Origin: Chlorokybus atmophyticus
Lineage: Eukaryota > Plantae > Mesostigma and Chlorokybus algae
Direction of reading: 5' to 3'
Length of the DNA stretch: 64,000 nt
Assembly: GCA_009103225.1 (NCBI GenBank)
Contig: RHPI01003788.1
Location: forward strand, 88,839-152,838
The translations under genes and the position numbers were made by a program. The notes under the pieces are model-generated. The model was not told the DNA's origin, did not search any database, and worked only from the letters and a program-made list of their open reading frames with translations. Each line of letters opens with the position of its first letter. Within the stretch, counting starts at the first letter, position 1. Below are positions 15,930 through 64,000 of this stretch, in pieces.

Positions 15930-16120
15930 TGAAGACACCCTGCCCGCCGACGCCACCAGCGACACCAGCGACCAGCAACAAGCGCAGCGTCAAGCAGCAG
16001 CAGCAGCAGCGCCTGTTTTGCTGATAAGCACAAACGCTGAGAGAGTTTGCGCGGATATTGACACAGTTTGTGGCCGAATGCCTGGGGACACAAAGGGCTG
16101 ATATCTAGATGCCGGCAATG
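15930..16120 (-). repeat. Central element copy (reverse orientation) upstream of copy C
   Basis: cctgcccgccgacgccaccagcgac..caacaagcgcagc..cgcctgttttgctgataagcac followed by GATATC. Confidence 0.75.
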
Positions 16121-16999
16121 TCGGGAAGAAGGGTCAGCTGTGCAGCGCAGCCATTCCATCTTGGCAGCTGCGGGGCGGGCGGCGCCGGCGGCGGAGGACG
16201 ACGAAGGGAGAGAGCCCAAGCTGTAGAACACTCTCTTCAGCAAGTACAAAGAATTTGTCCGCTGATCTGCAGGAAGTGAGGTATGCATAGCAAGCTGGAT
16301 GACAGCCACTAGCCAATTGTTGGGCTAGTTGCTGGTTGACAGGTTTCTGAAGCAGCTGGGTGCAGCAATATATGTCGGGGCAGCTGCCAGGCTGTGTGTC
16401 ACAGTGCATGCAAGCTACATGCTGTTTGACAGCATGCAGCTTTGTGTGCGTGTGTTGACTCAGGTCCACTTCTAGCTAACTTGCTTTGGCGTAAGTGCTC
16501 TGATCAACTGCCACTGCGTAGTCTAGGTCTGCTGCCTGCAAGTGTGCCACAGTGTGCATGACCGCAAATACACCATCTTCACACTGTGCATGAATTGCAA
16601 TTGTTATTGTCATCAACATCAACTAATACCGGCTAGATTGCCAATGCTTCCATGACCAGCCATGCTGCTTTATGGTCAGTCGCTGGGTGACAGTGTATGC
16701 ATGGGGTGTGCAAGCCTACCCTTTGTGGGATGCTTGCCTACAACACGGTTACAACATTGCTAGCCCAGGACAAGCTCTCCTGAGTGTTATTTGGTCTCTC
16801 GGCTCAAACAAATTGTTGCCAAATGTGGCATTATACAATGCTTAGAAGCAACATGCTTGCTTGCCGATCGATAGCTGTGCTGCACTGCAGCTAGCTATCT
16901 CATAAGCATACACAATTTGTCCGTGCAAGCTTCACGCTGATAGCTACCACATGTCGCATGCTTGGCCTCATTCGTTTCGCCTCTCCTAGTTGACAATGC

Positions 17000-18799
17000 A
17001 TTGCATCAGCAGGACTCTCTGCGACAGCAGCTCAATCCATGGATGTTGTTTTCGCTGAGGCATCGACAGCATGTGGACTCAGGTAAGCCACACAAGCACA
17101 CACTCAACGGTAGCCTACCTTGCTGAGCATGCACTTGCGCATGCCAGTGAAAGCTGTCTTGGCTGAAAAACTCAAAGCTGCAACCCTTAGGCGGATGTCA
17201 ATGCGCCACAGCCGGGACGCATTGCAACGGAGTGGTTGCACTGTTGCAAGTCGCTTCTATCGGCAGCAACCACGAAAGCATTCCAGGTGGTATGACTGCC
17301 AGCAGCAAATGTGTGTTGTTACCTTTGTGCGCTAACACAACAGGAGGTATGACAGCAAGTGCGTGTGTTGCAGCATCCAAGTTGACAACAAGCTCACGGC
17401 TTGTTTGCTTGGCACCCAATTGCAATTGAAACATCGGCTGCGGCACACGCAGCTGCTTTGCGCTCAGAGTAATCAGCAATGTATTGGTCATAAAAGTTTG
17501 CTAGAGTGTTGTTTGCTTGACTGGTTGTATGCGACATGCTGACTGAAGAGTATGAGTGTTGTTACCTGTGCTGTCAATCCAGTATGCTCTGTGCGTGCGT
17601 GTGTGTGGACAAGCGCGCATGGATGCACATGTTTAAGCATGCATGCACGCGCAAGGGTGTGCACCCACCAACTGTTGCTGTTTGTAGACGACGACTTGAG
17701 TGACAGCAGCAGCGAGGCCAGCACACATCGACATGCACTTGTTCAAGGCGGCGGCAAGCAAGGACGCAACTCCAGTGAAGACCAGGCAGGTCTTGCCATG
17801 CATTCGGCGCAAGTCATACTAGCTTCTGCTAGTTTGGCCAACGTTGGCAGCTTTGCTATAAGTAAATCATTCGTCCTCTCAGGCTGATGCGTCTCATGGA
17901 GGGGCTGGCGAGCGCTTGTGGCAGCTTCCAACTGGCGTTTCCACCTCAGCCGTGATGGTCCCGTGCGAGTTTGAGCGCGACTTCAACATCGCTTTAATTC
18001 AGCGGGTCTGTGACTGCGTGCCCGCAGGTGACGAGGATTAAGCCAGCGTGGTAGTGCGTTACACTCTGCGCATAAAAGACATTCTGGACGCAGAACCGTA
18101 TACCAGCACGCTTGCAACCGGGTCAAGGAGGCGTGACCAGGCACTGCTGTTGAAGTTCTCGTTCAATGAAGAGACGCGCAAGTTCTTTTCAACAACGAAC
18201 GCCCTATTGCGGTCGGGATCGCATGGCTGCTGGGTGTGACAGCGGAGATGTATCAAGTGCGAGAACTTTGCGATGCCCCAACTATCATTTTCACGGGATC
18301 CCCAGAACGAGCGCATGTGGCAGCGTACTTGTGTGGCTTTGCAATCATATCATACAACAATGCCAGTCACAACTACATTTACAAGGTAAGCTGGCTGGTA
18401 CACAACATTCAATATCATCTGCCACCCAGCATTTTTCTTCTGTGCTAGCACAAAGCGGAACACGCATGCGTATGTTCAGCTTTGAAAAACGCAGACACAC
18501 GCGCACACACGCATTGAGAAAAACGCGCGCACACACACGCATGTGCGCATGTGCGTGTACATGCACAGATGCATATGTTGACAACTTGTGTATATTATGC
18601 ATGGCAGAAGGATACCCGCAAAGATTTTGTGACAATCGGAACCAACAAAATGTACTTTTCTGTGGATGATCACATGAAGCGATGGACGGACGCAGTCCTT
18701 CAAGGCCTCGATATTGTTATCCCTTCCGACCGCAGTATGACAGTCAAACCACTTGACAAATTACCGGGCGCGGCCGTGCCTCCCTTGCTCGGAGCATAG
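17000..18799 (+). pseudogene. Family-1 copy C (in-frame stop and frameshift in core exon)
   Basis: GAGGATTAA stop near 18040 where the twin copy G has Gln; frameshift near 18200; the last exon to ..PPLLGA* is intact. Confidence 0.85.
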
Positions 18800-20189
18800 A
18801 GCTGTACTACAAGTCGCCCATTGCACACAAAAAGCCCCCATCTGGTCTTCTCAGCTGTACCGTCTGATTCAGTCTTAATTCAACGATTGATACTCAGTCA
18901 AGGCTTGGGTTCCAAGCAAGCTTGCTGGCGCAAAGCTGACACTAAACACTCAGTTGCCACTGGAAGTAGTTGTAAATGTGAGAGCTTCAAGTGGCTGTTG
19001 TGACAAGCACCTGTGTTGGCTTTGGCGTTGCTTGTTGTAACACATTATTCATCTTGCTGCATCGCATATGTTACACATACATCATGTCATGATAATTTGT
19101 CGTGCACATGAGGCTCATGCGCACGACAGTCAGTGACAGCAAGTTGACCTTGGCACGTGTACAAAATGCTGGACACAATTGCCCATACATAAAACATGTA
19201 TGGGCAATCAATAGTAGTATAGCATCACACGCCAACCAACCATATTATCATTCAAGTCGATCACTGGGCTACACAACTACATCGCTACTCCACTGCCACT
19301 ACCTCATGTGTATAATATATGCACTGAGATGATGATGACACGCAGCAACTCATCATTCATTCACTACTTACCTTCCACGTGACCACCGAGCTAAGCACGC
19401 ATTGTTAAGCTACTTCACTACTTCTAACCCTTCTATTGCCCAACCCTGTTGACCATGCATGCATGGATGTGTGCACACGCGTTGTAAAGCGCCTTCCTGC
19501 ATGGACGCGGAAGACTCACGCACTCCCCGGCTGCAGCTCCCAACCCTCCGTCGCCCACGATTGCAGCGCTTGCGTCACTGTTGTACGTAGTCATGCTGCG
19601 CTTTTGGGCTTCATCAGCTACTGCGACGCATGTCGACGTCTGCACGGCACTCCCGGTCGTTGAAGCTATCAAGCTGAAGTGTTGTGTTCCCCATCGATGA
19701 CGCTGGCAGACTGCACTGCTCCCCATGCACTTGCCGCTGCAAGTTGTCTTCGGCTTTGGCACTGCCCTGCACGACCAACAGAGCGGGCACCAACACCTGA
19801 CTACTTACACTATCCTATGTGTACATGCATGGTGCTCCCGGTCAAGCACCAACTATCCATATACCCACGTGCAAACAGCACAAGCTGATTCATCATGCAC
19901 AACCAACAAACCAAGCATCACGGAGCATGCATGTGCTACGTATATCATAGCATAGGGTGTGTCACACAATTAGTCGGATCAAGTCCCTGAGCACAGCTTT
20001 GCTTCAGCTTGTCGGACTTCTTGTGACATCATGAGTTGATGATCATAGGTCTGTGAAGGACTACATCTACGTGTATTCGTACACATGCGCACTCATGCAC
20101 ACGAACATGCAGACAACTTACATGCACGCACATGAGAGCACTCGCATGCACGGTTGCATACGTTAACAACCCCCGTGTCTTATGCGTGG

Positions 20190-20835
20190 TTGACGGACAC
20201 CCGGAAAGATTGTGTGACAATCGGAACAAAAGTTGTTTCTTTTGGGGGGGGGGGACTACAAATGTTAATTTTTTNNNNNNNNNNNNNNNNNNNNNNNNNN
20301 NNNNNNNNNNNNNNNNNNNNNNNNNNNNNNNNNNNNNNNNNNNNNNNNNNNNNNNNNNNNNNNNNNNNNNNNNNNNNNNNNNNNNNNNNNNNNNNNNNNN
20401 NNNNNNNNNNNNNNNNNNNNNNNNNNNNNNNNNNNNNNNNNNNNNNNNNNNNNNNNNNNNNNNNNNNNNNNNNNNNNNNNNNNNNNNNNNNNNNNNNNNN
20501 NNNNNNNNNNNNNNNNNNNNNNNNNNNNNNNNNNNNNNNNNNNNNNNNNNNNNNNNNNNNNNNNNNNNNNNNNNNNNNNNNNNNNNNNNNNNNNNNNNNN
20601 NNNNNNNNNNNNNNNNNNNNNNNNNNNNNNNNNNNNNNNNNNNNNNNNNNNNNNNNNNNNNNNNNNNNNNNNNNNNNNNNNNNNNNNNNNNNNNNNNNNG
20701 GACTACATAAAAAAGCGACCGATGGATGCAATTCTTAAAGGCCTTGATACTCTTACACCTTCCCTCTGCGACATGGAAGACAAACTCTTTGACAGGTTGC
20801 CGGGTGCAGGTGTGCTTCCCTTTTTCGGAGCATAG
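20190..20835 (+). pseudogene. Family-1 orphan last exon (copy D), spanning the N gap
   Basis: TDTRKDCVTIGTK before the gap and MDAILKGLDTL..LFDRLPGAGVLPFFGA* after it; no core exon upstream. Confidence 0.7.
20275..20699. other. Assembly gap (425 N)
   Basis: Run of N in the sequence. Confidence 1.
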
Positions 20836-21919
20836 AATTCACTACAAGTCCCCCCCTTGCACACCACAGTAAACTTTCAACTGACCCTCATTATCGACTC
20901 TGCACTCAATGGTCGCCCTTGACGCCATTAGAAGTATGGGAAGCTTCAAGTCAGTGTTGTGAGCAGCAGCAGCTGATGATGATGATGATGCATGCATGCA
21001 ATGTGGGTGGTCACACACAAAGTGACAGATTGACTCGGCACGTGCGTGTAGCCAACTCACGCAGCACAGGTTTCTTGGTATGAGTTTGAATGAGCAGCAA
21101 CGAGTGTTAACATTGATAGAACTGATTGCTGCAGTAGTAATCAAAGCAAGGCCTACAGATGTGTTTCTCAGTCTATTTTTGGGTGCATGCTCAACATACA
21201 GCCTCATAGAGTGGCTGGCAGGGTGAGGGGCCCAAACACAGCAAGTGATTTGCGTTGCAGCACAAGACATCAATGTCCTCCAAGAGCCACCTGGTATTCA
21301 CAATGTGTGCATGCCCGCGTGCGATCCATATGGCAACACACGCAGTCCACTGGACACTCGTACACTCGCACTCACCTTGACATGTGACATGTCAAGGTGA
21401 GTGAGAGTGTATGAGTGGTGAGCATGATCTATGCGGTGAATGCAACACACTTGCATGCAGACTACATGCGTTGCGACTTCCGTACACACTTAACGTCCTA
21501 TACGTTTATACACACCGTGCCTTCCTTGTCGTAGCCACCACCTCACACTACGCAACTTGCTAAGAGGCATGTAAATCAATTCACATGCCAAGGGCAAAGT
21601 TTATGCATATGTTGAAGAAGCGTCTCCTCCCTCGCCTCACTCCACCCTTACGAGTCGTCAGATACGACTAACTGCACTAACCGCACGCCAAAAATTGCAC
21701 GTTTCAAACCCACTCTATGACAGGCGGGCAGCATGCTGATAATGCTGCGTAGCAGTGGAGAGATAACGGCGCTTCCCCTCCTTAATAACCGAGTGCTGCC
21801 AGCACTTTACTGTCTAACAGCACGACAAGCCTGAAGAAGCTTATTTTTTAATTTCGTCTCGTCGTCCTTGTCAGCCACCGCTCTCACTGCAGCTGCACGC
21901 AAAAGCAAGAGAGCGCAGG

Positions 21920-22559: not shown

Positions 22560-24310
22560 ATTTACCCGCAGGACTCATTGTCGAGTGGCTCAAGCAGCTG
22601 GACTTTGTTGTAGCTGAGGCGGCAGCAGTAAGACCATGTGGAGGCAGGTAAGGCTTCACGCAAGCAAACAGCCACACAAGCAATACGCATTGGCAGAATG
22701 CTACAGAGCATGCCACTGACATTGTCTTGGGTAAAGCAAAGCTGGAATCCGCAGGCGGCTGTCTATGCACTACAGCCGACCCGGGGACGCATTGCAGTCA
22801 AGCCGGATGCGCTCTCACGTTGCAAACACTGGCAGTCGCGTACACACAGGCAGCAAGTGCAAAAGCATGTCAGGTAGTATAATTGCCAAATGCATGTGTG
22901 CTGTGTTATATTGCAGCTTGCAAACACTGCTGGGTTGTGCAACAATATTGTCACCCGTTACCCACTTGTTGAACAGCTTCTGAATGTAAGTGTTTCTGTG
23001 CATCCACTGCGTCTCAAGTTGTAGGAAGCTGACGCCTTCTTTGCTTGGAATCCGAATCAAGACTCGACTGCGGCCGCTTCTTGCTCAAAGTACGCAGCAA
23101 TGTTGTGCACGAATTGTCGTTTTTTGTTGTGTTGTTGGCTTGCTTACATGCAGCGTGTTAACTGGCACGTACGCTTGTAAAGCATGGGTGCGTGCGTGTG
23201 CACTCACCAACTACTCCTGTCTGTAGACGATAACTCCAGTGACGGCAAGCAAGAGCAAAACTTCAAAAAGAAAAAGGCAAGTCGAGCCATGCAATCGCTG
23301 CAAGTAGACTGTGCTGCATGAAGAGACCACTGCGTCTTCTAGCGTGACCAGCTTGAGCTTCTGCAAGACCAAACCCTTTTGGCTGTTCAGAATGATGCGC
23401 CTCATGAAGGAGCTGCCGATCGTTTGTGGCAGCTTCCAGCTGGCCGTGTGGTCGACGCCTTGATGGTCCCGTGCGAACTCGAGCCCGATTTCAACACCAC
23501 TTTGATTCAACGAGTGTGCGACAGCGTGCCAGATGGCAGAGAGGACCAGGCCAGCGTTGTTGTGCGATACGTTCTGTGCGTGAAAAACATGCTGAACGTA
23601 GCCTGTTCGGAACCGCATACCAACATACCTGCAGCCGAAACGAGGAAGCGAGATCAGGCCCTGCTGTTTGCTCACTCATATGACCATAGGTTATACAGAA
23701 ACTTTTGAAACTGCGAACAGATCATGGCAATGGGATTGCACAGCTGCTGGGTGTGAAAGCCCAGTTGTTTGACGTGCGAGAGCTTGACAATGCCCGGAAA
23801 ATCATGTTTACGGGATCCCCCGAGCGAGCGCATGCAGCAGCGTACGTGAGTGGCTTCACAATCACTGCCTCCGCCAATGCCAGCCGCAAATACGACGGGG
23901 TAAGCTGGCTGCTGTACAACATTCAGTGTTATCTGCCACCACCAACAACCCTAATCTTTTGCACAAACAAGAACACGTGCGTGCATGCACACGCGGAGGC
24001 ACGCAAGCAACGCATGCGCGCGCGAGTAAGCACGCGAATGCACATGGACAGATACATGTGGATACAAATCTTTGTGTACATGATATATGACGTGCTGTCT
24101 TTTGCATAGCAGAAGGGTACGCGCAACAAATTTGTGCCAGTTGAAACACCAAACCTGTACTTCGCTGTTGCGAACTCACTTGACGAGTACATGGAGCGAT
24201 GGGCGCGCAGTTCGTCAAGGTCTCAATACCATTAGACCTTCTAAACGCGACCTGACAATCTTGGACCTTAGACAACTTACCGGGCGCTGCCGTGCCTCCC
24301 TGGGATATAG
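22560..24310 (+). pseudogene. Family-1 copy E (stop and frameshift in core, disrupted last exon)
   Basis: DAPHEGAADRLWQLPAG..PCELEPDFN..RDQALLF stops at 23708 and resumes in another frame (GIAQLLGVKA..FTGSPERAHAAAY). Confidence 0.85.
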
Positions 24311-31249: not shown

Positions 31250-32012
31250 ATGCTACTAACAGGACTCTGTGCTGTGTCGCTCAACATGGATGCTGTTTTA
31301 GCAGAGGCGTCAACAGCATGTGGACTCAGGTAAGCGAACAAGAATATCGCGCAGCATGCACTTGAGCATGCCAGTGAAGCTGTCTTGGCAGAAGCAAGGC
31401 TACAATGTGCAGGCGGCTGTCAAGGTACTACAACCAGGATGCATTGCAATCCAGCGGCTGCGCTGTTGCAAGTCGCTTACACAGGCAGCAACCGCAAAAG
31501 CATATCAGGTGGTGGAAATGCCAGCAGCGTGTGTGTTACCATGTGAGCTGTGTTTCAGACTTGGAAAGACTGTTAATTTCTGCGACAAGACCTGTTACAC
31601 CAACTTCTGACTGTGAGTGTTTCTGTTACATCATCCAAGTTGGCAGGGAGCTGACGGCTTGCTTGCTTAGAACCCGACTCAAGACTCGGTTGCGCCACTT
31701 GCAGCCTCTTTGCGCGCGTTCGCAAAGTACGCAACGTTGTCTTGACTGGAAAAGTTGTTGACATGCTGTTGCTTGAGACTTGTACGCAACATGCCAATTG
31801 GAAACTATGAGTGTTGCTACCTGTGCTGTCGTTGTAATATGTGGTGGGGGGGGGGGGGGGGGGGGCGNGCGGACATGCATGCACGCGTGCGCATGCGTAA
31901 CCATGTGTGGGTGCACGTAAGCACATGCCAGTATCTCTCACAGCGTTTCAAATTTAATGGCAATATTTGCTTCTCCTCCGCAGCCATGCCGGCCTGGTTC
32001 AAACCCGCAATT
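31250..32012 (+). pseudogene. Chimeric fragment M: family-1 5' exons joined to the start of the family-2 AMPAWFK exon, truncated by the gypsy remnant
   Basis: HALEHASEAVLAE.. and QVGRELTACLLRTRLKTRL..SQ exons (phase-1 donor AAA|GTACGC near 31728), then CTCCTCCGCAG|CCATGCCGGCCTGGTTCAAACCCGCA (phase-1 acceptor at about 31983). Confidence 0.65.
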
Positions 32013-33238
32013 GAAGGGCAACGTGCGCAACGGTTTCGGTGGGAAGGAGGCCACCTTGTGCGCTTGATGCCTGATGGAGGTTTGAGGATTGTGCCTCAAC
32101 CACATGAGAGGAAGCCGCTTGTGGAGCTGCTTCATGAGAAGATGGGCCACTTTGGTGTCAAGAGGACACTTGGGCTTGTGCAATTAGCATATTGGTGGGC
32201 TGGCATGCAGTCTACCGTGGCGGGAGTGGTCGCGAGTTGTGTGGAGTGCGACAGGGTGAAGGCGAGCTTCAATGCCAAGCACCCATAGCTGCACCCTCTA
32301 CCAATACAAGGAATATTCTATCGATGGAGCCTAGATCTGGCCAGAGACCTACCAGTCAGCAAAAGAGGCAACCGCTACGTGCTCGTGATGATTGAGCACT
32401 TCTCAAAGTGGGTCGAGGTGGTGGCGTTGCCGTCGAAGAAGAGCAAGCTAGTTGCTGAGGCTTTCCTTGACCAAGCGCTGAGCAGATTCGGAGCCTGTGC
32501 CGAGGTCTCACTGACCAAGGCACTGAGTTTCGTGGCCAGTTCGATGACTTGTTGGCGCAAGCCTTCATTGATCATCGCAGGACTTCCCGTGATCATCCCC
32601 AAGCTGATGGGCTTGCGGAGAGAATGGTACAGGTGGTGAAGAAGGGGCTTCGCAAGTATGATCTCACTCACAACAAGAGAGACTGGGACTTGGCGTTGCC
32701 GTGGCTGGCGATGGGCTACCGCATGACGCGACAAGCTGCGCTGAGCTCATACAGCCCCTACTTCTTGTTGTATGAGAGAGAGCCCATACTGCCAACATCA
32801 ATCAGGAGGCAGGTTGAGCAGGAGCTTGACTTGGAGGATCCCAATGTGTGGGAGAGAGAGATAGCAAAGCGTGCAGAGCTGTTTTGGCGTGTAATGCCAA
32901 TGGCACTTGGCAACCTGCAAGTGGCACAACACCGCGACACGCTGCGCTATGCCAGGGTGAGGAGTGGCTTCTACAAGCCAAGACTGCAGGAGTTTCAGCC
33001 TAGAGACTTCATCTATCTGCAGGCGAAGACCAAGGACACATTGGACACGAGTGCGAGTCGCACCATTCTGCATGAGAAACAGGTCCTCAGCAACGGAGTG
33101 TTGCTGCTGGAGGGAGCTGATGCTTGCACTACCAAGGAGCACATGAAAAGCTGCGCTCCTTGCCATCTGCCCAACGTGGATGACCACGTGGATCCGTCGA
33201 CGGCAATACCAGGTGTGGATCACCGTTGTGAGCGGTGT

Positions 33239-33912
33239 TGTGACGGTGCTCGTGCCTTGTCACCTGTGAGTTGGTCCCATCAACAACCCTCTCACCAAGA
33301 CACGGTATTCACACCGGAACCTTGCCCCCTCTGCCAAGCACACACGCGCGCCCCGCCACTCGCGTACGCACGCGCATGCGCTCGAAGCTACACACCGACT
33401 TGTGTAGCGCCTTGAATCGTCACACAAGCAAGCACACACCAGTGGCCACACGCTAGCAACCCCTGCTAACCACCACCAAGCTTGCACACCAGAAACTAGG
33501 GAGCTAAAGGTTCTATTGCACATTGTAGAATGTCACTTTTATACCTACCAGTCTGCACATGCTACTGTCTAGACAATTCTAGCGCTGAACGAAACTAGAA
33601 GCTAAGATATTCTTGCAGAATCTTGTAGTACACTTCTAGACCTTTCCAACGCACCAAAGATCTCCTAATATGCTGCTCATATGGTCAAGTTATACTACTT
33701 GGCGCCAGGCCCTTCCAGAAATCTGGTCGAGCCCTTCTCGACTGGCCCTCCGTTTTCTGGCACCTTCCGGACTGGTCTTGGGGCCCCGGTCGATATCCGC
33801 GGCAGACTCATAACTCGCCGATATCCGCCACAAGTCATAAAAAAACATGTACCTTACAAATAAGGTCTAAAATGGCCATGAAAATCACACAATTATGGCC
33901 TTGACTGTTACA
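33239..33912 (-). repeat. 3' LTR of the chromovirus (674 bp)
   Basis: About 12 substitutions and 2 single-base indels versus the other LTR by eye (about 98% identical). Confidence 0.95.
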
Positions 33913-33925
33913 CTCCTTCCCCCCT
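33913..33925 (-). other. Polypurine tract of the chromovirus
   Basis: Minus strand AGGGGGGAAGGAG directly abuts the 3' LTR. Confidence 0.9.
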
Positions 33926-33929
33926 AGGT

Positions 33930-36900
33930 GAGCTTCGTCCTCGAAGCTCGCGAGGTTGTCGTCGAGCAAGATAGTCACGCACAACGTCTTGAGCATGAGT
34001 CAAGTGTGCCTCTGGCTCTCAGGATGCTTCATGCAACGGATAGCCCTTCCATTTCACTAAGAACTTGCGTACGCCATGCACAAACTTCTCACCAAGGATG
34101 TCTTCTACCTCCCACTCTGGTTCACCATCCGTGCCAACTTCGGGGGGCGGCCTTTCTGGCGGTTGTCCTCGATATGCTTTCAGAAGGGAGACGTGAAAAA
34201 CGGGGTGCACACGCATGGTGTCGGGTAGCTCCAGCATGTACGCCACATCCGAAATAACTTTGCTGACCTTAAATGGTCCCAACCAGCGTTCATTCAGCTT
34301 GCGAACTCCCATACGCACCTGGACGTGCTTCGCGGAGAGTAACACAATGTTGCCTTCCTGAAACGTGAGGTGTCGGCGATGCGCGTCTTCGTACTGCTTC
34401 TGCCGATTTTGTGCCACCAATAGCGCCTCCCTAGCTGCCTTGTTAATGTCCGCGCACTTTGTAAGGAAGTCATTAGCTGCCTCCACGCACGTCATGTCGT
34501 CGCGGTGTCCATGACGTCAACGGTATCAATGGATATTGCCCGTAGTTTATAAGGAATGGAGTGACACCTGTGCTTGCATTGTGGTGGTTGTTGATCGCAA
34601 ACTCCACCAACTCAAGCAGCTCCGCCCAATTGTCTTGTCGCGCGTTAACGTAGCAACGCAGCATGTCCTCAATCACACGATTGGCCCGCTTCGTTTGCCC
34701 ATCAGTTTGCGGGTGGAATGCCGTGCTAAACTTCAATGTGGTACCAAGTGCACTATGCAGCGCCTCCCAAAACTTACTCGTAAAGCGCGGGTCGCAATCA
34801 CTCACAATGCTTCGTGGTAATCCATGAGAACGAAATACATGCTTCACGAACAAGCGTGCTGCCTCCGGTGCCGTGCAAGACTCACTACACTGTGCCAAGC
34901 GTACCATTTTGCTGGTTTTATCGACGAACACAAGTATAGCGTCGTACCCTTCTTTTGTCTTTGGTAGCCCCGTGATAAAGTTCATGGTAACTTGCTCCCA
35001 CTTGGACAATGGCACAGGGAGAGGTTGCAGCAACCCACCTGGCTTTTGGTTGCTTGCCTTCACCCTTTGGCATGCGTCGCACAACGCCACGTAGTCGCGC
35101 ACATCGCGATGCATCTCTCGCCAGTAAAAACGCTGTTTTAAGCTTGCCAAAGTCCTTTCCAACCCTTGGTGACCAGCAATGGGCACGTCATGAGCTTCCT
35201 TCAGCAATCTCACGTGGATATGCGCAACGTTATGGATGTACAAGCGCCCGTGGTGCCACAGCAGCCCGTCGCATTGACCAGTGCCCACTTGTGTCCGTAG
35301 CTGCATTTTCCAGCTCTTGCAACACTTTCATACCCTCCGTGTCTTCACGAAGCACTTGCCAAATCTGGTCGGTCCACTCGGGCTGCACTTGAGCGAGTGC
35401 CTCAATTGCATTAAGCCGGCTCAGCGCGTCAGCAACACCATTTGACGTACCGGGCTTGTACTTGATATCGAAGTCAAAAAGTTGAAAGAACTCAAGCCAT
35501 TGAGCTTGTCTGCGACTTAGATGAGGTTGTGTTTGTAAGTACCTCAGTGGAGAGTGATCCGTCTCAAGCACGAACTTTTTGCCTTCCAGAAAACAACGCC
35601 ATTGTGGTAGCGCCATGACTTGCGCCAAAAGTTCCTTCTCGTGCACGGGGTAATTCAGCTCCGCACCACTCATCTTCTTGCTGAAGAATGCTACTGGTTG
35701 AAGGCCGTTGCCATGGTCTTGCTGCAAAACAGCTCCTACGGCTGTGTCGGACGCGTCGCAAGCCAAAATAAATGTCTTTTCCATGGCGGGGTGAGCCAGG
35801 ACTGGTGCCTCCGTCAGCGCCTTATTCAACGCAGCAAATGCATGTTCCTCTATTGCTGACCAGCTTCAAGGCTTTCCCTTCTTAAGTAGGGCAGTCAAGG
35901 GAGCAGCTATTCGCCAAAACCCCATGATAAACTTGCGATAATACCCCGCAAGGCCTAAAAAGGACATCACCTCCTTTACGTTGGTTGGGGAAGCCCACTC
36001 GCGCACCACCTGCACTTTGTTGGGGTCCGGCTTGATGCCTTCATGCGACACAATGTGGCCTAGGTACTCCACCTCTTGAAGCAAAAATTTGCACTTTTGT
36101 AGCTGGGCGACAACTTGTGTTCGCAAACGCTGCAACACGCGCCGTAGAAGTGCCACGTGCTCCTCCTTTGTTATCGCATACACCAAAATGTCGTCGAGGT
36201 ACACGAGAATTCCCTTACCAATCAAGTCAGCAGAAACGCTGTTCATAAGCGTTTGAAATGATGCCGGTGCGTTTTTAAGTCCGAAGGACATGACCAACCA
36301 CTCGTAGTGCCCATAACGTGTGTTAAAAGCTGTTTTCTCCACATCCTCGGGCGCGATGCGGATTTGGTGATAACCTCCAGCAAGATCAAATGTTGTGAAG
36401 TACTGCGCACCTTGCAATTGCTCCAGCAACTCGTCGATACGTGGGAGTGGAAAGCAATTCCTCTTCGTGATGTTGTTGAGAGCTCGGTAGTCGACGCACA
36501 TGCGCAAGCTCCCGTTCTTCTTTCGTACAAACAAAATAGATGCACCATAGGGGGACTTACTAGGCCTGATGTAGCCTCTTTTCAGCAAGTCCGCCACCTG
36601 CCTCTCGGCCTCTTCCAGCTCCAAAGGTGACAACTTGTATGCGGGTCGATACGGTGGCTTGTGCACGCCCTCAATCAGCTCCACCCGATGGTCTACGCTC
36701 CGTGGAGGTGGTAGACCAGATGGAAGTCCGTCCACCATGATATCTTGGTATTCTTTAACAAGTTTATACACCTCGGGGTCCATCGTAGCCGTCTTAACAT
36801 CGTCACTCAGCTCTGGTGCTGACTTTGCAGTGTTTTCGCGCACCACGCACAACCATGCAGCCTTTGCCTCCCGTGGAGACAATAACTTGCTCAATTGCAC

Positions 36901-37300
36901 ATAACAGATCTGGGCAATTGTCGTACCACCTGATTGTGCGTGCCGCGCCTCGATGACGTCCGACGCAGCTTGAATGGATTCTCCACCATTTCGTTCGATG
37001 GTGAGCGCGCGCTTCCTCCAATTGATGGATGGATTATATTGCCATAGCCACGGTAGTCCCAATATCTCGTCAAACCCGTTCCGTAGGGTAATGCAGCAAA
37101 ATCGCATGTTCTCCTTTATCTTCCCAATGCGAACGCACAACTCTTTGGTCGTAAATGCAGCGCCATCACCTCCAGAGGGTAGCTCTCCATTAGCGAGCTT
37201 CACTTCACCTCCTCGTAATGACGAAAGCCAACCGTAACGCCGCGATATCAATACTCATGAAGTTGCTGTTGACACCGCTATCAATCATGAGCTTACACTC
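33930..37300 (-). pseudogene. Chromovirus pol (protease-RT-RNase H-integrase-chromodomain), broken into several ORFs
   Basis: ORFs 35866..37251 (ILGLPWL, LRMCVDYRALN, YLDDIL), 35230..35829 (LACDASD..HEKELLA), 34473..35306 (HDVPIAGH..CDAC, AFHPQTDGQ) and 34019..34495 (HPVFHVSLLK, EWEVEDIL..FLVKWKGY); TGA replaces the chromodomain Trp after EAS. Confidence 0.92.
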
Positions 37301-37312
37301 TCTCAATCGTCC

Positions 37313-38490
37313 TTAGTCATCGCAAATGTGTGCTCGAAGCTCAAAGTACTTTGTTGTCTCCTCATTTGCATAACTCACCACCATTGGCGCGTTCAAAGCC
37401 ATCTCCTCTTGCTTCTTTAATGGAAATGTCACAGCATTTGTCCATGCATGAGGCTCCTTCCTATCCCCAGCAGTAGCCTCCTCACCTATTAGGGGAAGTC
37501 GTTTTCCTGCTCCACGCCATTTTGCTCCATGGTGTTGACGCGACGATCGGCGAGGGTTGCCATCCGGTCTTGGCCTTTGCGTGCTTCGTTTGGGGCATCC
37601 GTACGCCAAATGCTCCGTCGACCCACACGCATAACACTTGCGCACACCTTTACCTCTTTCACCACGTCCGCCGTGCTTCGCCGCACTTCCATGCGTGTGT
37701 ATGGCACCCATTGGTGCAGGCCCAGAGTCAGCTCCATCTCCATTGGCAAGTGCTAAACTTGGCTCTCCTCGTCTCCATGCATGTTGAAAGCCTCCCCGGG
37801 GCTAATCACCATGCCTTTGCCTCCAGTCAGTATTTCTTGTGGTGGACTTGAAGTACAACGCGTCGAGACGCTCCGCGATGCGTATAGCCTCCGCGAGTGT
37901 CTTAGGGTCCCGTAGCTCCACTTCTTTACGCCCCAAAGGTTTTAAACCACGTGTATACCTGTCCAACTGCTCCTCCTCGGTCATATTGGGTATGGACATC
38001 ACTAATCGCTGAAACGCGGCCGTGTACGCCATCACCGACCCCATTTGCACAAGGGCTGCAAATTTGTTGCGTGCGGCCTTTACGCTCTCAACGGGAACAA
38101 ATTGATGCCTGACCTCCAGTGCCAAATCTTCCATGGTGGTCAATGGTAGCGCCAACTCGTTTGCAACACGCGTACATCGATGCCTCCACCACACAAGTGC
38201 TGCACCTTCAAGCAATGTCGCTGCAACCTCCACGTGCAGATGCGTGGGCACCTCCATGAGCTTCAACTAAGACGATACTTGAAAAATCCATTCATCCACT
38301 GCATCTCCATCACGTTGACCCCTGAATGGCTTGGGCTTTGGCACCTTCACATGCACGCGCGAGCTTGATGCCATGGGAATTTGTACATGCGCCATCGCAT
38401 GCTCATACGCCTCGTGTTGTGCTTGTGCCGCCGCTTGCGTGTGATGAAGCTTTTCTCTTAATGCTAAGATGGCAGCTTGAAACTCTTCCA
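37313..38490 (-). pseudogene. Chromovirus gag with CCHC zinc knuckle, disrupted
   Basis: PKPKPFRG..VDEWIF, LLEGAALVWW, RELRDPKTLAEAI, PMEMEL and CYACGSTEHLAYGC across several ORFs. Confidence 0.88.
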
Positions 38491-38580
38491 TGCGAGCATC
38501 CTCCATCTCCACTAACACACTACACTCCGCTTCCGAATGAAAAGTGTAAACGCCCACACACTTCCTCTCTCACCTTCGTA

Positions 38581-38598
38581 AACCGCGCTCCGATACCA
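38581..38598 (-). other. Primer-binding site complementary to a tRNA 3' end (initiator-Met-like)
   Basis: Minus strand TGGTATCGGAGCGCGGTT, 2 nt inside the 5' LTR; close to the plant tRNA-iMet PBS TGGTATCAGAGC. Confidence 0.8.
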
Positions 38599-38600
38599 GT

Positions 38601-39272
38601 TGTGACGGTGCTCGTGCCTTGTCACCTGTGAGTTGGTCCAATCCACAACCCTCTCACCAAGACACGGTATTCACACCGGAACCTTGCCCCCTCTGCCAAG
38701 CACACACGCGCGCCCCGCCACTCGCGTACGCACGCGCATGCGCTCGAAGCTACACACCGACTTGTGTAGCGCCTTGAATCACCACACAAGCAAGCACACA
38801 CCAGTGGCCACACGCTAGCAACCCCTGCTAACCACCACCAAGCTTGCACACCAGAAACTAGGGAGCTAAAGGTTCTATTGCACATTGTAGAATGTCACTT
38901 TTATACCTACCAGTCTGCACATGCTACTGTCTAGACGATTCTAGCGCTGAACGGAACTAGAAGCTAAAATATTCTTGCAGAATCTTGTAGTACACTTCTA
39001 GACCTTTCCAACGCACCAAAGATCTCCTAATATGCTGCTCATATGGTCAAGTTATACTACTTGGCGCCAGGCCCTTCCAGAAATCTGGTCGAGCCCTTCT
39101 CGACTGGCCCTCCGTTTTCTGGCACCTTCCGGACTGGTCTTGGAGCCCCGGTCGATATCCGCGGCAGACTCATAACTCGCCGATATCCGCCACAAGTCAT
39201 AAAAAACATGTACCTTACAAATAAGGCCTAAAATGGCCAAGAAAATCACAAAATTTGGCCTTGACTGTTACA
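38601..39272 (-). repeat. 5' LTR of the chromovirus (672 bp)
   Basis: Direct repeat of 33239-33912, flanked by the PBS inside and the TSD outside. Confidence 0.95.
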
Positions 39273-46379: not shown

Positions 46380-48170
46380 CGCATGGACTTTTTCCTTGTT
46401 GAGGCGGCAGCTTGTGGATTCAGGTAAGCTACACAAGCACACACAAGCACATTTTTGTGTGGCACACAATCAACGTCAGCACTTGCGCATGCCAGTGAAG
46501 TTGTCTCAGCTGAAGCAAAGCTGCGATGCACTGGCGGCTGTCAACACATCACAGCCGGGACGCATTGCAAATCAGCGGTTGCACTGCTACAAGCAGTCAC
46601 TTCCGCCAGCAACCACGAAAGCATGTCAGGTGGTGTGAGCGCCAGAAGCATGTGTGTTTGGCGTCAGCTGTTACAACCAGTTCATGACGTCGATCGTTTG
46701 TATTACAGTGTCCAAGTTTATGGGAAGCTGACGGCTTGTTTGCTTGGGACCCAACTCAAGACTCGGCAACAGCTGCGTCTGCTTTCCGCACAATCGCAGA
46801 GTACGCAGCAGTGTGAGCGCACCTCATATTCGCTTGATGAATGCTTAGGGCTAGTTTACAGCGTGCCAGTGGCAGTTACACAGTGGTTGTGATCACCGTG
46901 TGACACATGCTGTCTTTGCTCAATGTGCGTGTGCACGCGCACACGTGCTCATGCGTGCTTGCACGCATGCGCGTGCGCACGTGTGTACATGTATTTGTCT
47001 GTATGCCACAAGAATACAGATCAACGGTGGTTGTCTGTAGATGATGACTCCACCGACAGCACAGACCAGTACCAGCATGACAAAGCCGGCAGCGAGCACA
47101 AAAAAAGCCTCCGATGAAAATCAGGCAAGTAGCATGTGCTGCGTAAGCGAACAACGCACAGCTGATCAACAATAATAGCCATATCACTGTCTATCAAACC
47201 GCTTCCGTGCTCTCAGGAGGATGCGCGTAACGAGGGGGAAGGGGCTCCCAAGTGCTTCTGGCAGCTTCCAGCTGGCATTATGTACACCGCCTTGTTGGTC
47301 CCATGCAAGCTCGAGCCCGACTTCAACACCATGTTGGACGCAGAACCGCAACCCAACAACGTGCAACCGAGTGGATGAAGCGTGACCAGGCGCTGCTGTT
47401 CAGTTACTATGACAACGAGAGACGCAAATACCTTGGTAGCAGGGAACAGGCCATTGCAGTCGGGGTCACACGGCTCTTGGGTGCGAAAGCGATGATGTAT
47501 GAAGTGCGAGAGCTTGGCAATGCCCGGACAATTGTGTTCACGGGATCCCCCGAGCGAGCGCATGCAGCAGCGTACGTGAGTGGCTTTGCAACACAGCACT
47601 CAGCAACGCCGAACGCAATCACAACGAGGTAAGCTGACTGATACACAACAACCAACATTCAATGTTGGATGTTGGTGGCAGATAGATTAAGTGCCAACAG
47701 TTTCCCTTCCTGTTTTGCAATAAAAGTTGAGACCACATGCGTGCATGCATGCACAGGCACACACACACGCGCACTCGGATACACAGGCACCTTCCATGCT
47801 TGCAATGCACACACACGCATGCACGCACAGCCCTGCCGAATATTGACTGTGCCATGTGTCACTTATGCATACGTACTTTGTATACTACGAACGCACACAC
47901 GTGTGCACACAGATATATTCGTTGATCAACACCTTATGCATGGCAGACCGGTTGGCGCAAAGTCTTTGTGCCAGTTGGAACACCAGAGTTGTACTTCTCT
48001 GTCAAGTAGACAAGTGATGATTACTTGGAGCAATCGACGGATGCAATCCTTCAAGGTCTCAATAGCACTCTCAATATTGCTAGACCATCCGACTGGAGCA
48101 TGGAAGTCAAACCACTTGACAGTCTACCGGGCGCTGCCGTGCCTCCCTTACAACTAGTAGAGGCATAGAG
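46380..48170 (+). pseudogene. Family-1 copy H (close relative of B; internal deletion and frameshifts)
   Basis: Core jumps from EPDFNT straight to MLDAEP (about 30 codons missing near 47330) and shifts frame; the last exon is also disrupted. Confidence 0.85.
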
Positions 48171-49559
48171 CTGCACTACAAGTCGCCCTTGACAAACCAC
48201 AACCAATTTTGGACTGTCAAGCTGTAATTTTTTATCAACACTGCACTCATTGGTTGTGCTACTTTGATTCTGAGCAAGCACGAAGCGAAGCTGCCACTTG
48301 GACGGACCCCAAAGTAGTAACAGCTGTGAGAGTTTCAAGTGGTGGCTTGCATAAAGTCATGATATGTTCTCTGTCAAATATATAGGCTTGGCCCGGGCAC
48401 GCGCGTAAGACTAATCCCCTCAGCACAGCACTGCCGCAATTGACTGTTTCTTCAAAAGCAGCAATGGCAGTGCCACACTTCCATTGCGCATTGTTTGTAC
48501 ATTGCTGCTTGATTGCTCGGAAAGCCAAAACAGCAGTAGTATGGCTACAAATGTTTGTTTTTCGGTCTGTCTCTGCTGCGTGCATGCGTAACAAACAGCA
48601 CCCTCACAGTCCCGGGTCTGCTAAGCTGGGGTCCAAACACAACAAGTACTCTCTGTGTCGCAACGGCATCGGATCACTCTAAACAACCTCACAGCGGCCG
48701 GATGACCTCCACAGACTCAGCATCCAGAAAGCTTCATACACAATCCTCATGCCTAAGCTTGTTCGTAGCTCCACCACAGCAAGCACGCACAAGAATGCTG
48801 TAGCCACGCAGCAAGGCACGTACCGGTAACTGGATCGCATGCGAAGTTCATAAACCCTGTGTGCACAAACGTCTCCACTCTGACCAACTACCTGCACACC
48901 GCCACCGCCGACAGTGACAAGTTTGTTCAGTGCAGGGCCTGTTTTGTGCTTTAAGCACCAATTGCCACACAAGCTATCGGGAGGCGATCTATTATCACAG
49001 CCAGCACGGGCCTCTCTGCCCTTTTGCTCGAGGAAAAGGCTCCTCCCATTTGCGCGGCGGCGGCGGAGGAGGAGGAGGAAGACGAGGAGGAGGACGAGGA
49101 GGGGTGGGTGGAGGAAAAGGAGGAGATGACATGCCAAAGGTGAAGGGGCGCCTCGCTAAGAGATGAGGGGCTTCAACTTGCTTGTTATGTGCTGATCAGC
49201 TGGTCGTTGAAAGGGCTCAGTGGATCAGTTTGAGCCAGACTTGGACTGGGTAGCCGCATTTTGACTCATGGCATGCCCGCACTTGGGTAACTTTGCCCTG
49301 CTTGTGCTCAGCAGGGCAATGCAAGCGGGAGGATCAACCCTCCCGAAGTTGTGTTTCAAGAGTTTGTTCGTATTGTAACAGCATTTGTTTGGTGCACACG
49401 CCTGCACCGAGCAACATTTTCAACTCCAAACTGGCAATTGTATTGCTATAAGAAGCAATGCAAGTCACGGCGTTGACAATACCTCTTTAAGTTGCAGCAA
49501 GCCTGCACGGTCTTGGGTATTCCACAATGAGGAGGTCCATCGACTTCAAAACGCTGAAC

Positions 49560-50580
49560 CATCCTCTTGTTGTTGCTGCTATTGGTGCAGCATACTGGCG
49601 TGGCTGTAAGTGGGCGGCTGCTTGTTGCTCGCAAGGAGGCAACCACAAAGAAGATGATGGCGGTAAGGGTTGGAGAAATACACTGTACCTGTGCGCGTTC
49701 GCATGTGCGTGTATGTCTATACATGTGCATGCTTGCGTGTATGCACATATGTGGTTGTATATGTGCATGTGCGCGTGTGCGCGTGTAAGTGCATGCGTGC
49801 GTTTGTGTGTGAGACAGCTTATGCATTCAATATCGCTGTATTGCTGAGTGTGCACAGAGGTGCTAGTCTGGAACAGACGTGCAGACGATCAAAGGACTAC
49901 CAACAAACTGTCATTGTTGCAGTCTGGTTTGGAGTCGTTGCTGTCCAGTTTAAACATGCTTGTCAAGTTGCAATTTCAGAGTGCAGATTGCTTGAAAGGC
50001 CCGGGTCATTTATGTTTAAGCTAGTGATTGTGATTAGCGTAGAAGAGGGAGCGCCAGATCACATCTTGTATCACGCCCTTCAAGTGCTGTGCAAGTGCGT
50101 CCGCGCATGTCTGTGTTTGTGTATGCGACCTCCCCGCGCACACGCGCACACGTGCGTGTGTGCATTTGCATTTGCGTGTGCGTGTGCGTGTGTGAAATTG
50201 ATGTGTGCGCAGGAGCGCCTGACACCCGAGCAAGAGGACGCCATTTGTAATGTGGACGCCATCATTATCGGCTTGCAACACAGTTGCCCTATTTGCAGTA
50301 TTGCAGACGCAACCCAAGCATGCCATCAGTCATTGACAGACACTCCATACTGGTTGATATTGCCGTTCAGATCGATGCAACGCGTTGTGTCGTGCGCACC
50401 CAAGTGCAAAGATGTTTTGCTCCAAATGGACAAAGACGTGACATTCTTGGCGTTCGCGTTGGTAAAGGAAGAGGGCCAACATGAACGAGGGGCCAGAAAG
50501 AGACGAGATAGCAGAAGCAGCACTCGCGCTCGCCCGCGAGTTGGACGTTGTGGTGAACATTAAAGGGAGCACAAGGTAAG
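49560..50580 (+). pseudogene. Family-2 copy R (divergent, multiply frameshifted)
   Basis: AACCSQGGNHKEDDG| exon; last exon ERLTPEQEDAICNVDAII..LVDIAVQID / APKCKDVLLQM..LAFALV / EAALALARELDVVV spread over three frames. Confidence 0.65.
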
Positions 50581-54315: not shown

Positions 54316-56059
54316 ATGGCGTTGGCCGCAGCGACAAGCCTGCACAGCACAGGGGTGACAAGAAGGTTTTCTGCTAACTCTACTGCTGCTCCGCATCGCC
54401 GTGCTGCTGCTGCTGGACCGTCATGCTGGAGCCGTGGGTATAGAAGGAGCACTGCTTGCTGCTCTGGAGGCAGCCAAAAAGATGACAGCGGTGAGTGCGT
54501 GTGTGCAAGCGTACGCATGTGTGCGTGCACGCACAGACAAGCACACTCAATTCAGAACAACTTGACACTGATGGCGTTATTGCTATTGTTATCCGCAGCC
54601 ATGCCAGCCTGGTTCAAACCCGCAAACGAGAAGCTCAACCAACTGACTGTCGACATTGGGTCCATGGAGGCGTATATAATGCCCATCGCTTCAAGAAAGT
54701 CAGGTCGATCGCACGCGTGCAGATGTCCAAGCATGCCTGTCCGCGTGTGTGCTTTCTTGTGCACTTATCAACTGTTGTGGTTTGTAGATGATACCTCAAG
54801 TGACACTGGCCTCGCTACCGTAGTGACTGGCAACGAGGCCAGCACCAATACGCTTGTTCAAGGAGACAGTACCGGCAAGTCAGAGCACAATCCCAATCAG
54901 AACCAGGCAAGTTGTGCATGCAATTGCCAGTAGCCTGTGCTGCCTGAGGAGACCACTGCTTCCTCTGTCTTGACTAACATAGGCATCTTCGCCATGTCTC
55001 AATGTTGAGACGCGGGAGGGTTAACCCTCCCGTCCTCTCAGGTCGATGCGCCTCATGGAGGAGATGGCGAGCGCTTGTGGGAGCTTCCAGCTGGGAAACC
55101 AGTCTCAGCCTTATTGGTGCCGTGCAAACTCGAACCCGGTTTTAGCACCGCTTTGATTCAGCGGGTGTGCGGCATAGTGCCAGCTGGCAGCGAGGAGCAG
55201 GCCAGCGTTGTCGTGCGCTACGCTCTGCGCGTTAAAGACATGCTGGACGCAGAACCGCAACCCAACATACGTGCAACCGCAACGACGAAGCGAGATCAGG
55301 CCCTGCTGTTCGGTTACTCTTCTGACCATAGTCTATACAGTGACCTTCGTAGCAGGGAACGGACCATTGCGGTTGGGATCGCACGCCTCCTGGGTGTGCA
55401 AGCGAAGATGTATGAAGTGCGAGAGCTTGGCAATGCCCCGACAATTGTGTTCACGGGAACTCCCGAGCGAGCGCATGCAGCAGCGTATGTGTGCGGCTTT
55501 GCAATAACAGCATACGGCAATGCCAAGTTCAACTACCGCGGGGTGAGTTCACTGAGTGACATTTGATAATCAATGTTACCCAGTGGCAGGTTGATGATCT
55601 GCCACCAAGTACCAACGTAATCTTCTTTGTTTGCGCCTGGAGTTTAGAACGCATGCGAGCATGCACAGGCACACACACATACGCACCTTGCATGCTTATA
55701 ATGCACACACCTGCATGAAAGCACAGCCTGTGCCCTGCGCATGATTCGTGAAATGTGTCACGTATGCATACGTGCATCAGATTCACGCACGCACGCACAC
55801 ACACGTGCACGAACATATGTTGACCAACAACTTGTGTGTGTCTCATGCATGGCAGACCGGTTGGCGTAAAGTCTTTGTGCCAGTTGGAACATCAAAGTTA
55901 CACTTCTCTATCAAGGAGACACTTGATGATTACTTGGAGCAATGGACGGACGCAGTCTTTCACGACCTCAACATCAGTAGACCTTCAGACCGCGACATGG
56001 AATTGAAACCACTTGACAGATTACCGGGCGCTCCTGTGCTTCCCTTGTTTGGAGCGTAG
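54316..56059 (+). CDS. Chimeric copy J: family-2 5' exons fused in frame to family-1 3' exons; exons 54316-54490, 54599-54703, 54788-54906, 55042-55542, 55856-56059 (367 aa)
   Basis: Phases 1,1,0(GC donor),0 are all compatible, 1104 nt total, no stop. N-terminus MALAAATSLHSTG..TACCSGGSQKDDS/AMPAWFKPANEKLNQL is family 2; DDTSSD linker, LWELPAG core and ..LPGAPVLPLFGA* end are family 1. The start codon is uncertain. Confidence 0.65.
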
Positions 56060-59559: not shown

Positions 59560-59770
59560 TGCAGCTGAAGTGAGGGCGGTGGCGTACGAGGAGAAGGAGG
59601 AGGAGGAGTTAATCTAAGCTTCGGCGGGCTTGCCGTCGCTTAGGAAGGGAGGCGCAGTTACTGCTACTGCCCCGCATCATTGTCGCCATGCTGCTCGCTT
59701 ATCATGCTGGAGCAGTGGGTATGAAACGAGCACTGCTTGGCGTTGGCGTGCAGGGAGAAGGCGCTTCTTG
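59560..59770 (+). pseudogene. Family-2 5' fragment
   Basis: GC-rich acidic block followed by TAPHHCRHAARLSCWSSGYETSTA, homologous to the first family-2 exon. Confidence 0.5.
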
Positions 59771-63703: not shown

Positions 63704-64000
63704 TTGCAAGTCATGGCGCTGGCTGCAACGACAAGCCTAAGCAGCACAGGGTGGATCACGAGAGTAAACTCTTTTATCTGTATTGCTCCTCATCATTGTC
63801 GCCGTGCTGCTGGCCCGTCATATGGGAGAGGTGGTAATAGAAGGAGAACTGCTTGCTGTTCTGGAGAAGGCAGCCGAAAAGATGAAGTTGACAGCGGAGA
63901 GGGTTAGTGTGTGTGCGCTCGCATCAACGTATACCGGCATGTGCGTGCATGTGTGCATTCGTACAAGCTCACGCATGTCAGAATTTGCGTATGTGGAGAT
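63704..64000 (+). other. Family-2 first conserved exon; gene continues beyond the window
   Basis: QVMALAATTSLSSTG..APHHCRRAAGPSY..RRRTACCSGEGSRKDEVDSG, homologous to 54310-54490. Confidence 0.6.

Follow-up and report, generated by a model that had tools for sequence, protein, structure and literature searches.

A probable divergent relative of the phage and bacterial DUF7168 domain in an amplified, intron-bearing gene family of Chlorokybus atmophyticus

Background

The closest described counterparts of the algal domain analyzed here are phage and bacterial proteins that combine two Pfam families, namely DUF2786 (PF10979; a 40-residue hairpin profile with a cut-off of 23.9 bits) and DUF7168 (PF23771; gathering cut-off of 25.5 bits). 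The present study concerns a stretch of 64,000 nucleotides of the streptophyte alga Chlorokybus atmophyticus (assembly GCA_009103225.1, contig RHPI01003788.1, positions 88,839 to 152,838 of the forward strand), hereafter called the window, and in particular the coding region at positions 55042-56059 on its plus strand. A sequence-only reading of this region had proposed that it encodes the C-terminal domain of a eukaryotic, intron-containing homologue of the DUF2786-DUF7168 proteins, conserved in all copies, domesticated, and amplified.

DUF7168 proteins are abundant, as shown by the 258 phage records that matched one query by tblastn and the 275 proteins found at E ≤ 0.001 by a word-index search. 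Their genes occur in the replication module of Stenotrophomonas phage AXL1 (gp74), between the genes for exonuclease A and DNA ligase in Delftia phage PhiW-14 (gene 202, encoding a 237-amino acid (aa) protein with both PF10979 and PF23771), between those for thymidylate synthase and RdgC in the case of the Dfl-JY45 homologue, and in the Mu-like early region of Pseudomonas phage JBD25 (gp06). DNA polymerase I and DUF2815 are further neighbors of the phage DUF2786-DUF7168 genes. This recurrent replication, recombination or early-module setting provides a possible lead to function, a literature search on both domains having yielded incidental annotations and no functional study. A search of viral contigs for loci related to AXL1 gp74 returned no relative. 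In streptophytes, horizontal gene transfer (HGT) from bacteria is recognized by a prokaryote- or phage-type domain that occurs in one algal lineage and that carries host-type introns and a host-type composition.

A two-exon domain with a DUF7168-like core

The region under study encodes the C-terminal domain of copy 9 (Table 1), an intact member of a Chlorokybus-specific gene family. This domain of 234 aa is encoded by two exons, e1 and e2, and its coordinates as well as its three characteristic segments were given correctly by the sequence-only reading. These segments are LIQRVC..PAGSEEQASVVVRYALRV, IAVGIARLLGV...IVFTGTPERAHAAAY...AYGNAKFNY, and DYLEQWTDAVFHDL. Exon e1 encodes an N-terminal strand specific to the family (W.LP.G...LVPC), followed by a helical hairpin and by the initial half of the DUF7168-like core with IAVGIARLLGV and IVFTGTPERAHAAAY. 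Exon e2 encodes a beta-hairpin that is likewise specific to the family (VFVPVGT..LHFS), together with the Y..xWTDAV helix and an LDRLPGA tail. The intron between both exons splits the DUF7168-homologous region.

A profile built from an alignment of four e1 products was used for an exhaustive hmmsearch of 1.84 billion representative proteins, with eight matches. Seven of these were genuine and all from Chlorokybus (scaffolds Chrsp171, to which the window belongs, Chrsp2, and Chrsp175 of C. atmophyticus, Joint Genome Institute (JGI) Chlat1). An exact look-up of five of them (P0001, P0002, P0004, P0005, and P0006) assigned each to C. atmophyticus, and a human origin of the contig was rejected. 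Four of them are gene models of copies within the window (P0001, copy 2; P0002, copy 11; P0003, copy 5; P0007, copy 3), and three are more distant paralogues (P0004, P0005, and P0006), 29-36% identical to P0001. The eighth match (P0008), an Ala-rich repeat protein, was rejected as spurious. Within the protein set searched, the family thus exists only in Chlorokybus, and the fungal and other algal relatives that had been envisaged for a phylogeny were not found. A word-index protein search with e1 gave no match among proteins of 92-292 aa, because this length range excludes the real products (333-386 aa). Comparison of the algal domains with 50,697 phage records by tblastn gave no relevant match, a scan of the family against NCBIfam no match, and a literature search on Chlorokybus and HGT no title or abstract concerning this family.

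DUF7168 (PF23771) was the only Pfam family found at E < 0.01 for the algal sequences, and it was matched by three of the four e1 translations of the window and by four of the five full-length paralogues. The score of P0006 (28.9 bits, E 1e-6) exceeded the gathering cut-off, that of the window gene P0001 (25.4 bits, E 1.2e-5) was 0.1 bit under it, and those of e1 of copy 9 alone (21.1 bits, E 2.6e-4; aa 99-154 to profile positions 17-69), P0004 (19.6 bits, E 7.7e-4), and P0005 (17.8 bits, E 2.6e-3) were lower; P0002 gave no match with this profile. The matching stretch was the same across all positive sequences. In P0001, it extended from aa 214 to 313 (profile positions 24-108), crossing the intron junction (aa 275/276) and taking in the Y..xWTDAV helix. 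In the independent PHROG library, the best match of P0006 was PHROG 421 (E 0.005, profile positions ~62-134 of 241), the family that scored 181, 152, and 233 bits with the phage control proteins phiA8-29 gp040, AXL1 gp74, and JBD25 gp06, respectively. For e1 of copy 9, PHROG 421 came second (E 0.26, versus 0.23 for the top family); the four other paralogues had no PHROG match at E ≤ 0.1.

For profile-profile comparison by hhalign, a reference set was assembled from JJ01 gp41 and AXL1 gp74, both named in papers and both carrying PF10979 and PF23771, to which eight diverse phage homologues from tblastn and ~115 proteins from the word-index search were added; the best 120 listed all carry both Pfam domains. 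The algal alignment matched 14 diverse members with a probability of 50% (P 1.6e-4, 120 columns) and 140 phage and bacterial members with a probability of 69% (P 4.4e-5, score 37.9, 98 columns), versus scores of at most 19.4 and P values of at least 0.04 in the controls (either alignment reversed, or the algal columns shuffled 40 times). The signal depends on family breadth, as it was seen only with a diverse or deep alignment. The second and third segments, whose correspondence to the phage pattern had been proposed in the sequence-only reading, indeed aligned in register, with IAvGvArLlgV on phage LA..VA.af.C, vvFtG..RAHAAAY on phage v.F.G....lA.Y, and Y..xWT.AV on phage aF..GW..V. At profile level, these results support homology of the central ~100 residues to DUF7168, with very strong divergence. 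The family of the window would, by transitivity, belong to the same superfamily, since P0006, a paralogue from another scaffold, passes the Pfam cut-off and matches the e1 profile of the window (E 1.9e-17).

Predicted structure and possible function

An AlphaFold2 model of residues 116-340 of P0001, based on ten family sequences (predicted local distance difference test (pLDDT) 74; predicted template modelling score 0.80), displayed a single compact alpha/beta unit of ~225 aa. A model of e1 alone with four sequences had a lower pLDDT (56), and the fold search was made with the P0001 model. The predicted order of elements is strand, hairpin, strand, helix, beta-hairpin, long helix, small beta-hairpin, helix, and strand. 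The helical hairpin (helices 29-37 and 47-63 of the modelled segment) is located at the expected place upstream of the core, and the small beta-hairpin at the start of e2 (VFVPVGT..LYFS) represents an insertion when compared with the phage proteins. In BFVD, the P0001 model matched phage proteins best (Foldseek E 8e-3 to 8e-2; lengths of 240-320 aa; probabilities of up to 1.0). Among them, ranks 9 and 16 were named DUF2786 proteins, and rank 7 was a PhiW-14 protein that is probably the gene 202 product, because both are 237 aa long and come from this phage. These matches are supportive, though not significant on their own. No better-known fold competed in the PDB searches, since both the fold search with the algal model (glutamine synthetase, template modelling score (TM) 0.2) and the sequence profile search (PhoU, E 0.7) returned noise only; neither retrieved a solved structure of a family member.

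The positions that the algal and phage families have in common are hydrophobic, Gly, or aromatic, none of the polar residues being conserved between the two. This argues for a non-enzymatic binding or scaffold module rather than for catalysis. As the phage homologues are encoded in replication, recombination, or early modules, the best guess, which is speculative, is that the domain could act as an accessory factor binding a partner of DNA metabolism.

The gene family in the window

As for the claimed amplification, tblastn with the products of both exons revealed ten further e1 and/or e2 copies in the window, bringing the total to ~11 (Table 1). Their e1 products are 55-71% identical to that of copy 9 (E down to 1e-71), which is far above chance level. 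The position of the e1/e2 junction is identical in every copy that has retained both exons. The JGI models P0001 (Chrsp171S02336) and P0002 (Chrsp171S02340), whose C-terminal domains correspond to copies 2 and 11, map to these copies at 100% and are spliced exactly at this junction, in agreement with the proposed eukaryotic, intron-containing nature; both have different N-termini. The proposed conservation in all copies has to be qualified, as e1 and e2 are both open in only four copies (2, 6, 9, and 11). The other seven contain stops, frameshifts, or a deletion (five copies), are truncated (one copy), or abut an assembly gap (one copy). The JGI models P0003 and P0007 probably describe pseudogenes. 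The former is located on decayed copy 5, where it bypasses the frameshifted portion of e1 and terminates out of frame, and the latter covers the 3' part of decayed copy 3.

Self-comparison of the window indicated that the family units are segmental duplications that include flanking sequence. Copy 6 lies within a 4.7-kb inverted duplication of the region of copy 3, and the e2 products of both copies are identical. This inverted duplication continues beyond an assembly gap that interrupts one of its arms. Among the four open copies, the nonsynonymous (dN) and synonymous (dS) substitution rates amounted to 0.22-0.34 and 0.47-0.61, respectively, with dN/dS ratios of 0.45-0.64. Because of these values, the family is considered to consist of old duplicates under weak purifying selection that decay frequently, i.e. 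to evolve by birth and death. These ratios lend weak support to the idea that the family is domesticated and functional, with more than half of the local copies being decayed.

The 5' part of the copy 9 gene was inferred from the sequence. Three upstream exons, in frame with e1 and e2, yield an open product of 367 aa. As the first two of these exons are members of a second repeated exon family, the model might be a chimera or comprise two separate genes. The intron directly upstream of e1 has a GC donor (CAG/GCAAGT, with the slash marking the exon end), at the place where copy 2 possesses a GT donor (CAG/GTAAGT); the alternatives are a GC-AG intron and a damaged splice site. The first 55 aa of the inferred product lack acidic residues and are rich in Ala, Ser, Thr, and Arg. 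The N-terminus of P0006, a protein that also possesses a C-terminal hydrophobic tail, is similar. Some N-termini of the family look like organelle transit peptides.

Table 1. Features of the window, with positions counted from its first nucleotide; a slash marks an exon border
Feature	Position	Strand	Description
Copy 9, intact	55042-56059	+	e1, intron, and e2
Copy 9, exon e1	55042-55542	+	167 aa; phase 0; acceptor ...ctctcag/gtc directly 5'
Copy 9, intron	55543-55855	+	GT-AG (gtgagt...cag); phase 0
Copy 9, exon e2	55856-56056	+	67 aa; stop to 56059
Copy 9, inferred 5' exons	54316-54490, 54599-54703, 54788-54906	+	Last exon with GC donor at 54907
Copy 9, intron 5' of e1	54907-55041	+	GC donor
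Copy 1, decayed	7441-6432	-	e1 (7441-6953) with in-frame stop; only final 44 aa of e2 recognizable (6563-6432)
Copy 2, intact	10790-11840	+	e1 10790-11296, intron, e2 11604-11837 plus stop; 5' exons from near 9961; GT donor at 10681
Copy 3, decayed	17886-18796	+	Stop and frameshift in e1
Copy 4, partial	20701-20832	+	End of e2 only, right after assembly gap
Copy 5, decayed	23394-24284	+	Stop and frameshift in e1; frameshift in e2
Copy 6, open	43901-42990	-	e1 43901-43407, e2 43178-42990
Copy 7, decayed	47220-48150	+	Deletion removing hairpin region of e1; stop in e2
Copy 8, decayed	51946-50906	-	In-frame stops in both e1 and e2
Copy 10, fragment	58311-58150	-	First 54 aa of e1 only
Copy 11, intact	61508-60613	-	e1 61508-61005, e2 60810-60613
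JGI model P0003	22571-24232		On copy 5
JGI fragment model P0007	18248-18796		On copy 3
Inverted segmental duplication	15586-20252 and 46213-41487		94.7% identity; carries copies 3 and 6
Continuation of inverted duplication	20712-21762 and 41483-40448		89% identity
Assembly gap	20275-20699		425 N
Second exon family, most upstream exons of inferred copy 9 gene	54316-54703	+	Two exons
Second exon family, other copies	63713-63886, 59642-59737, 49494-49655	+	
Second exon family, other copies	26744-26312, 29929-29740	-	
Ty3/gypsy-type retrotransposon	33237-39272	-	Complete element
Retrotransposon open reading frames	34473-37251	-	RVT_1, RT_RNaseH, and integrase (H2C2 and rve) domains
Retrotransposon long terminal repeats	33237-33912 and 38599-39272	-	676 bp; 98% identical
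Putative second retroelement fragment	31755-33415	+	Exon motif MPAWFKPA, then Integrase_H2C2 zinc finger
Direct repeat	8092-8788 and 13150-13846		697 bp; 99.6% identity
Single N	13838		Within second copy of direct repeat
Sua5/YciO/YrdC exon	2172-2852	-	Pfam E 1e-31; Ala-rich N-terminal extension

Origin of the family

The probable explanation for these findings is that of a Chlorokybus-specific family with a DUF7168-derived core, an old transfer, and later remodelling and amplification. According to this explanation, an alpha-beta-beta-alpha-...-alpha core of ~100 aa would have descended from bacterial or phage DUF7168 (PF23771, PHROG 421), most likely after having been transferred horizontally, long ago, from a bacterium or phage to the Chlorokybus lineage. 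The domain would then have gained spliceosomal introns, one of them within the domain, and would have acquired the N-terminal strand-plus-hairpin and the beta-hairpin insertion, both family-specific. It would further have been joined to variable low-complexity 5' exons and been amplified. The growth of the family has occurred by tandem and inverted segmental duplication, with turnover by birth and death. The direction from prokaryote or phage to alga is the parsimonious one, because DUF7168 is abundant in phages and bacteria and the algal branch is found in one genus. The transfer was presumably not recent, because of the intron inside the domain, the host-like composition, and the dS of ~0.5 between copies. 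The window is eukaryotic nuclear DNA, with a uniform GC content of ~52%, GT-AG introns, and CA/CG-rich intron sequences.

Several results weigh against this explanation. The similarity to DUF7168 is visible at profile level only, with an identity of 13-15% over ~95 aligned columns. The copies of the window itself score 0.1-4 bits below the Pfam cut-off, and the hhalign probabilities are 50-69%, not > 90%; an hhalign run with 15 Pbunavirus-type DUF2786/DUF7168 proteins, a narrow set, found nothing. None of the Foldseek matches in BFVD reached E 1e-3, and their TM values were 0.3-0.47. In the e1 profile search of the 1.84 billion proteins, a value of E 1e-3 was not reached by any protein of bacteria or phages, and therefore no donor lineage can be named. 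In addition, more than half of the copies in the window are pseudogenes and the dN/dS ratios are high. Such marginal scores (17.8-28.9 bits; hhalign 50-69%; Foldseek E ≥ 8e-3), the failure with the narrow subfamily, and the Ala-rich nature of a matched segment (RAHAAAY) would also suit a fast-evolving orphan family of Chlorokybus unrelated to DUF7168, whose matches would result from the convergence of amphipathic, Ala-rich helices and from a widespread alpha/beta motif. This alternative is unlikely, given that five members with 29-56% mutual identity select one and the same Pfam family, aligned in a constant register, and no other family at a comparable E value, that an independent library (PHROGs) points to the same family, that the HMMER bias terms do not exceed 0.6 bits, that reversed and shuffled controls stayed at P ≥ 0.04 versus 4.4e-5 for the real alignment, that three separate motifs are collinear, and that the list of structural matches is enriched in DUF2786/DUF7168 proteins. 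The numerous and often broken copies, their location in a region with long terminal repeat (LTR) retrotransposon insertions, and the viral nature of their relatives could also be read as signs that they are not host genes and are carried by a mobile element or an endogenous viral insertion, having multiplied by transposition. This is highly improbable, as a protein identity of 55-71% and a dS of ~0.5 indicate old duplications and not a recent burst, while the duplicated units include flanking host-like sequence and common GT-AG intron positions, are not bounded by terminal repeats or a transposase, and have paralogues on two other scaffolds. Moreover, the GC content is uniform, and the sole LTR-bearing element is a separate Ty3/gypsy-type insertion (Table 1).

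Within the favored explanation of a DUF7168-derived core, it has to be considered how much of the phage architecture was inherited. The sequence-only reading included DUF2786 in the homology, based on its first segment. A true DUF2786 hairpin that has diverged past recognition would be in line with the position of the modelled hairpin, upstream of the core at the right distance, with one hhalign run that was collinear through the hairpin (query columns 40-169 to template columns 4-134 in the 14-member set), and with the Foldseek alignments to phage proteins, which span 180-200 of the 225 columns. PF10979, to which the phage control proteins scored 33-43 bits, was not matched by any of the nine algal sequences scanned at E ≤ 10. 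When the alignments were split, algal residues 1-95 versus the N-terminal 62 residues of the phage proteins gave P 0.09 and a probability of 0.6%, compared with P 5.3e-5 for the C-terminal halves. Furthermore, ahead of its hairpin the algal domain has a conserved strand (W.LP.G...LVPC) for which the aligned phage proteins show no counterpart. Inheritance of the full architecture is thus doubtful and a DUF2786 part of the algal domain is not demonstrated, a helical hairpin at the expected position being what remains of this part of the claim. The comparison with Pfam profiles that had been suggested in the sequence-only reading gave matches to PF23771, above the gathering cut-off for P0006 only, and none to PF10979. 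The structure prediction placed phage DUF2786/DUF7168 proteins among the BFVD matches, weakly, and only noise among those from PDB.

A more far-reaching scenario can be conceived, in which a captured phage replication or recombination accessory protein, provided with introns and new N-termini, would now serve a genetic-conflict or organelle-genome-maintenance system unique to Chlorokybus and diversify by birth and death. It is a very unlikely one, to which the transit peptide-like N-termini mentioned above are relevant.

Other features of the window

Besides the family of copy 9, the window contains a second repeated coding exon family, characterized by MALAA.TSLHSTG...TACCSGGS.KD followed by MP.WFK.ANEK, with at least five further copies besides the exons at the 5' end of the inferred copy 9 gene. 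The N-terminus of this second family is devoid of acidic residues and resembles an organelle transit peptide. One open reading frame of the plus strand starts with the exon motif MPAWFKPA of a local gene family and runs into an integrase zinc finger. It looks like a second retroelement fragment that was inserted into that exon, nested beside the complete Ty3/gypsy-type element. The insertion of the latter is fairly recent, because its LTRs are 98% identical. A direct repeat that is far more similar than the other duplicates of the window, and that contains a single N in its second copy, is possibly an assembly artefact or a very recent duplication. Finally, the cluster is bordered by an unremarkable host gene, to which the exon encoding a Sua5/YciO/YrdC domain belongs.

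Comparison with known systems

If the DUF7168 assignment is true, a eukaryotic, intron-bearing, and amplified branch of this domain would represent a further case of gene flow from prokaryotes or phages to algae, in a lineage that is relevant to the origin of plants, and would offer a second, independent biological setting in which the role of the DUF7168 fold can be addressed. Its practical value is limited, in view of the profile-level homology, the seeming restriction of the family to one genus, and the lack of an assigned function on either side.

Compared with PF10979, the algal domain possesses a two-helix hairpin of similar length, upstream of a DUF7168-like core, which differs in following an extra conserved beta-strand and in lacking significant sequence similarity. 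With the PF23771 proteins (AXL1 gp74, JBD25 gp06, and the product of PhiW-14 gene 202), it shares a collinear core, in which a helix (phage LA..VA.af.C, algal IAvGvArLlgV) is followed by a beta-hairpin that terminates in F.G, by the long A.Y... helix, and, further on, by a helix of the pattern aromatic-x3-W-x2-V. It differs from these proteins by its beta-hairpin insertion, the spliceosomal intron inside the domain, and its LDRLPGA tail, whereas the C-terminal G..aG tail of the phage proteins is absent; moreover, the algal proteins are eukaryotic, nuclear, and multi-copy. PHROG 421, which contains the phage DUF2786-DUF7168 proteins and is the best PHROG match of P0006, is reached by the algal sequences over the aforementioned part of its profile only. 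Unlike bacterium-to-streptophyte transfers in general, the algal family is amplified and decaying instead of being a single conserved gene, and has no donor clade that can be named. In comparison with all of these, the Chlorokybus family probably adds a eukaryotic branch with introns to a prokaryotic and phage domain family that is known, though uncharacterized.

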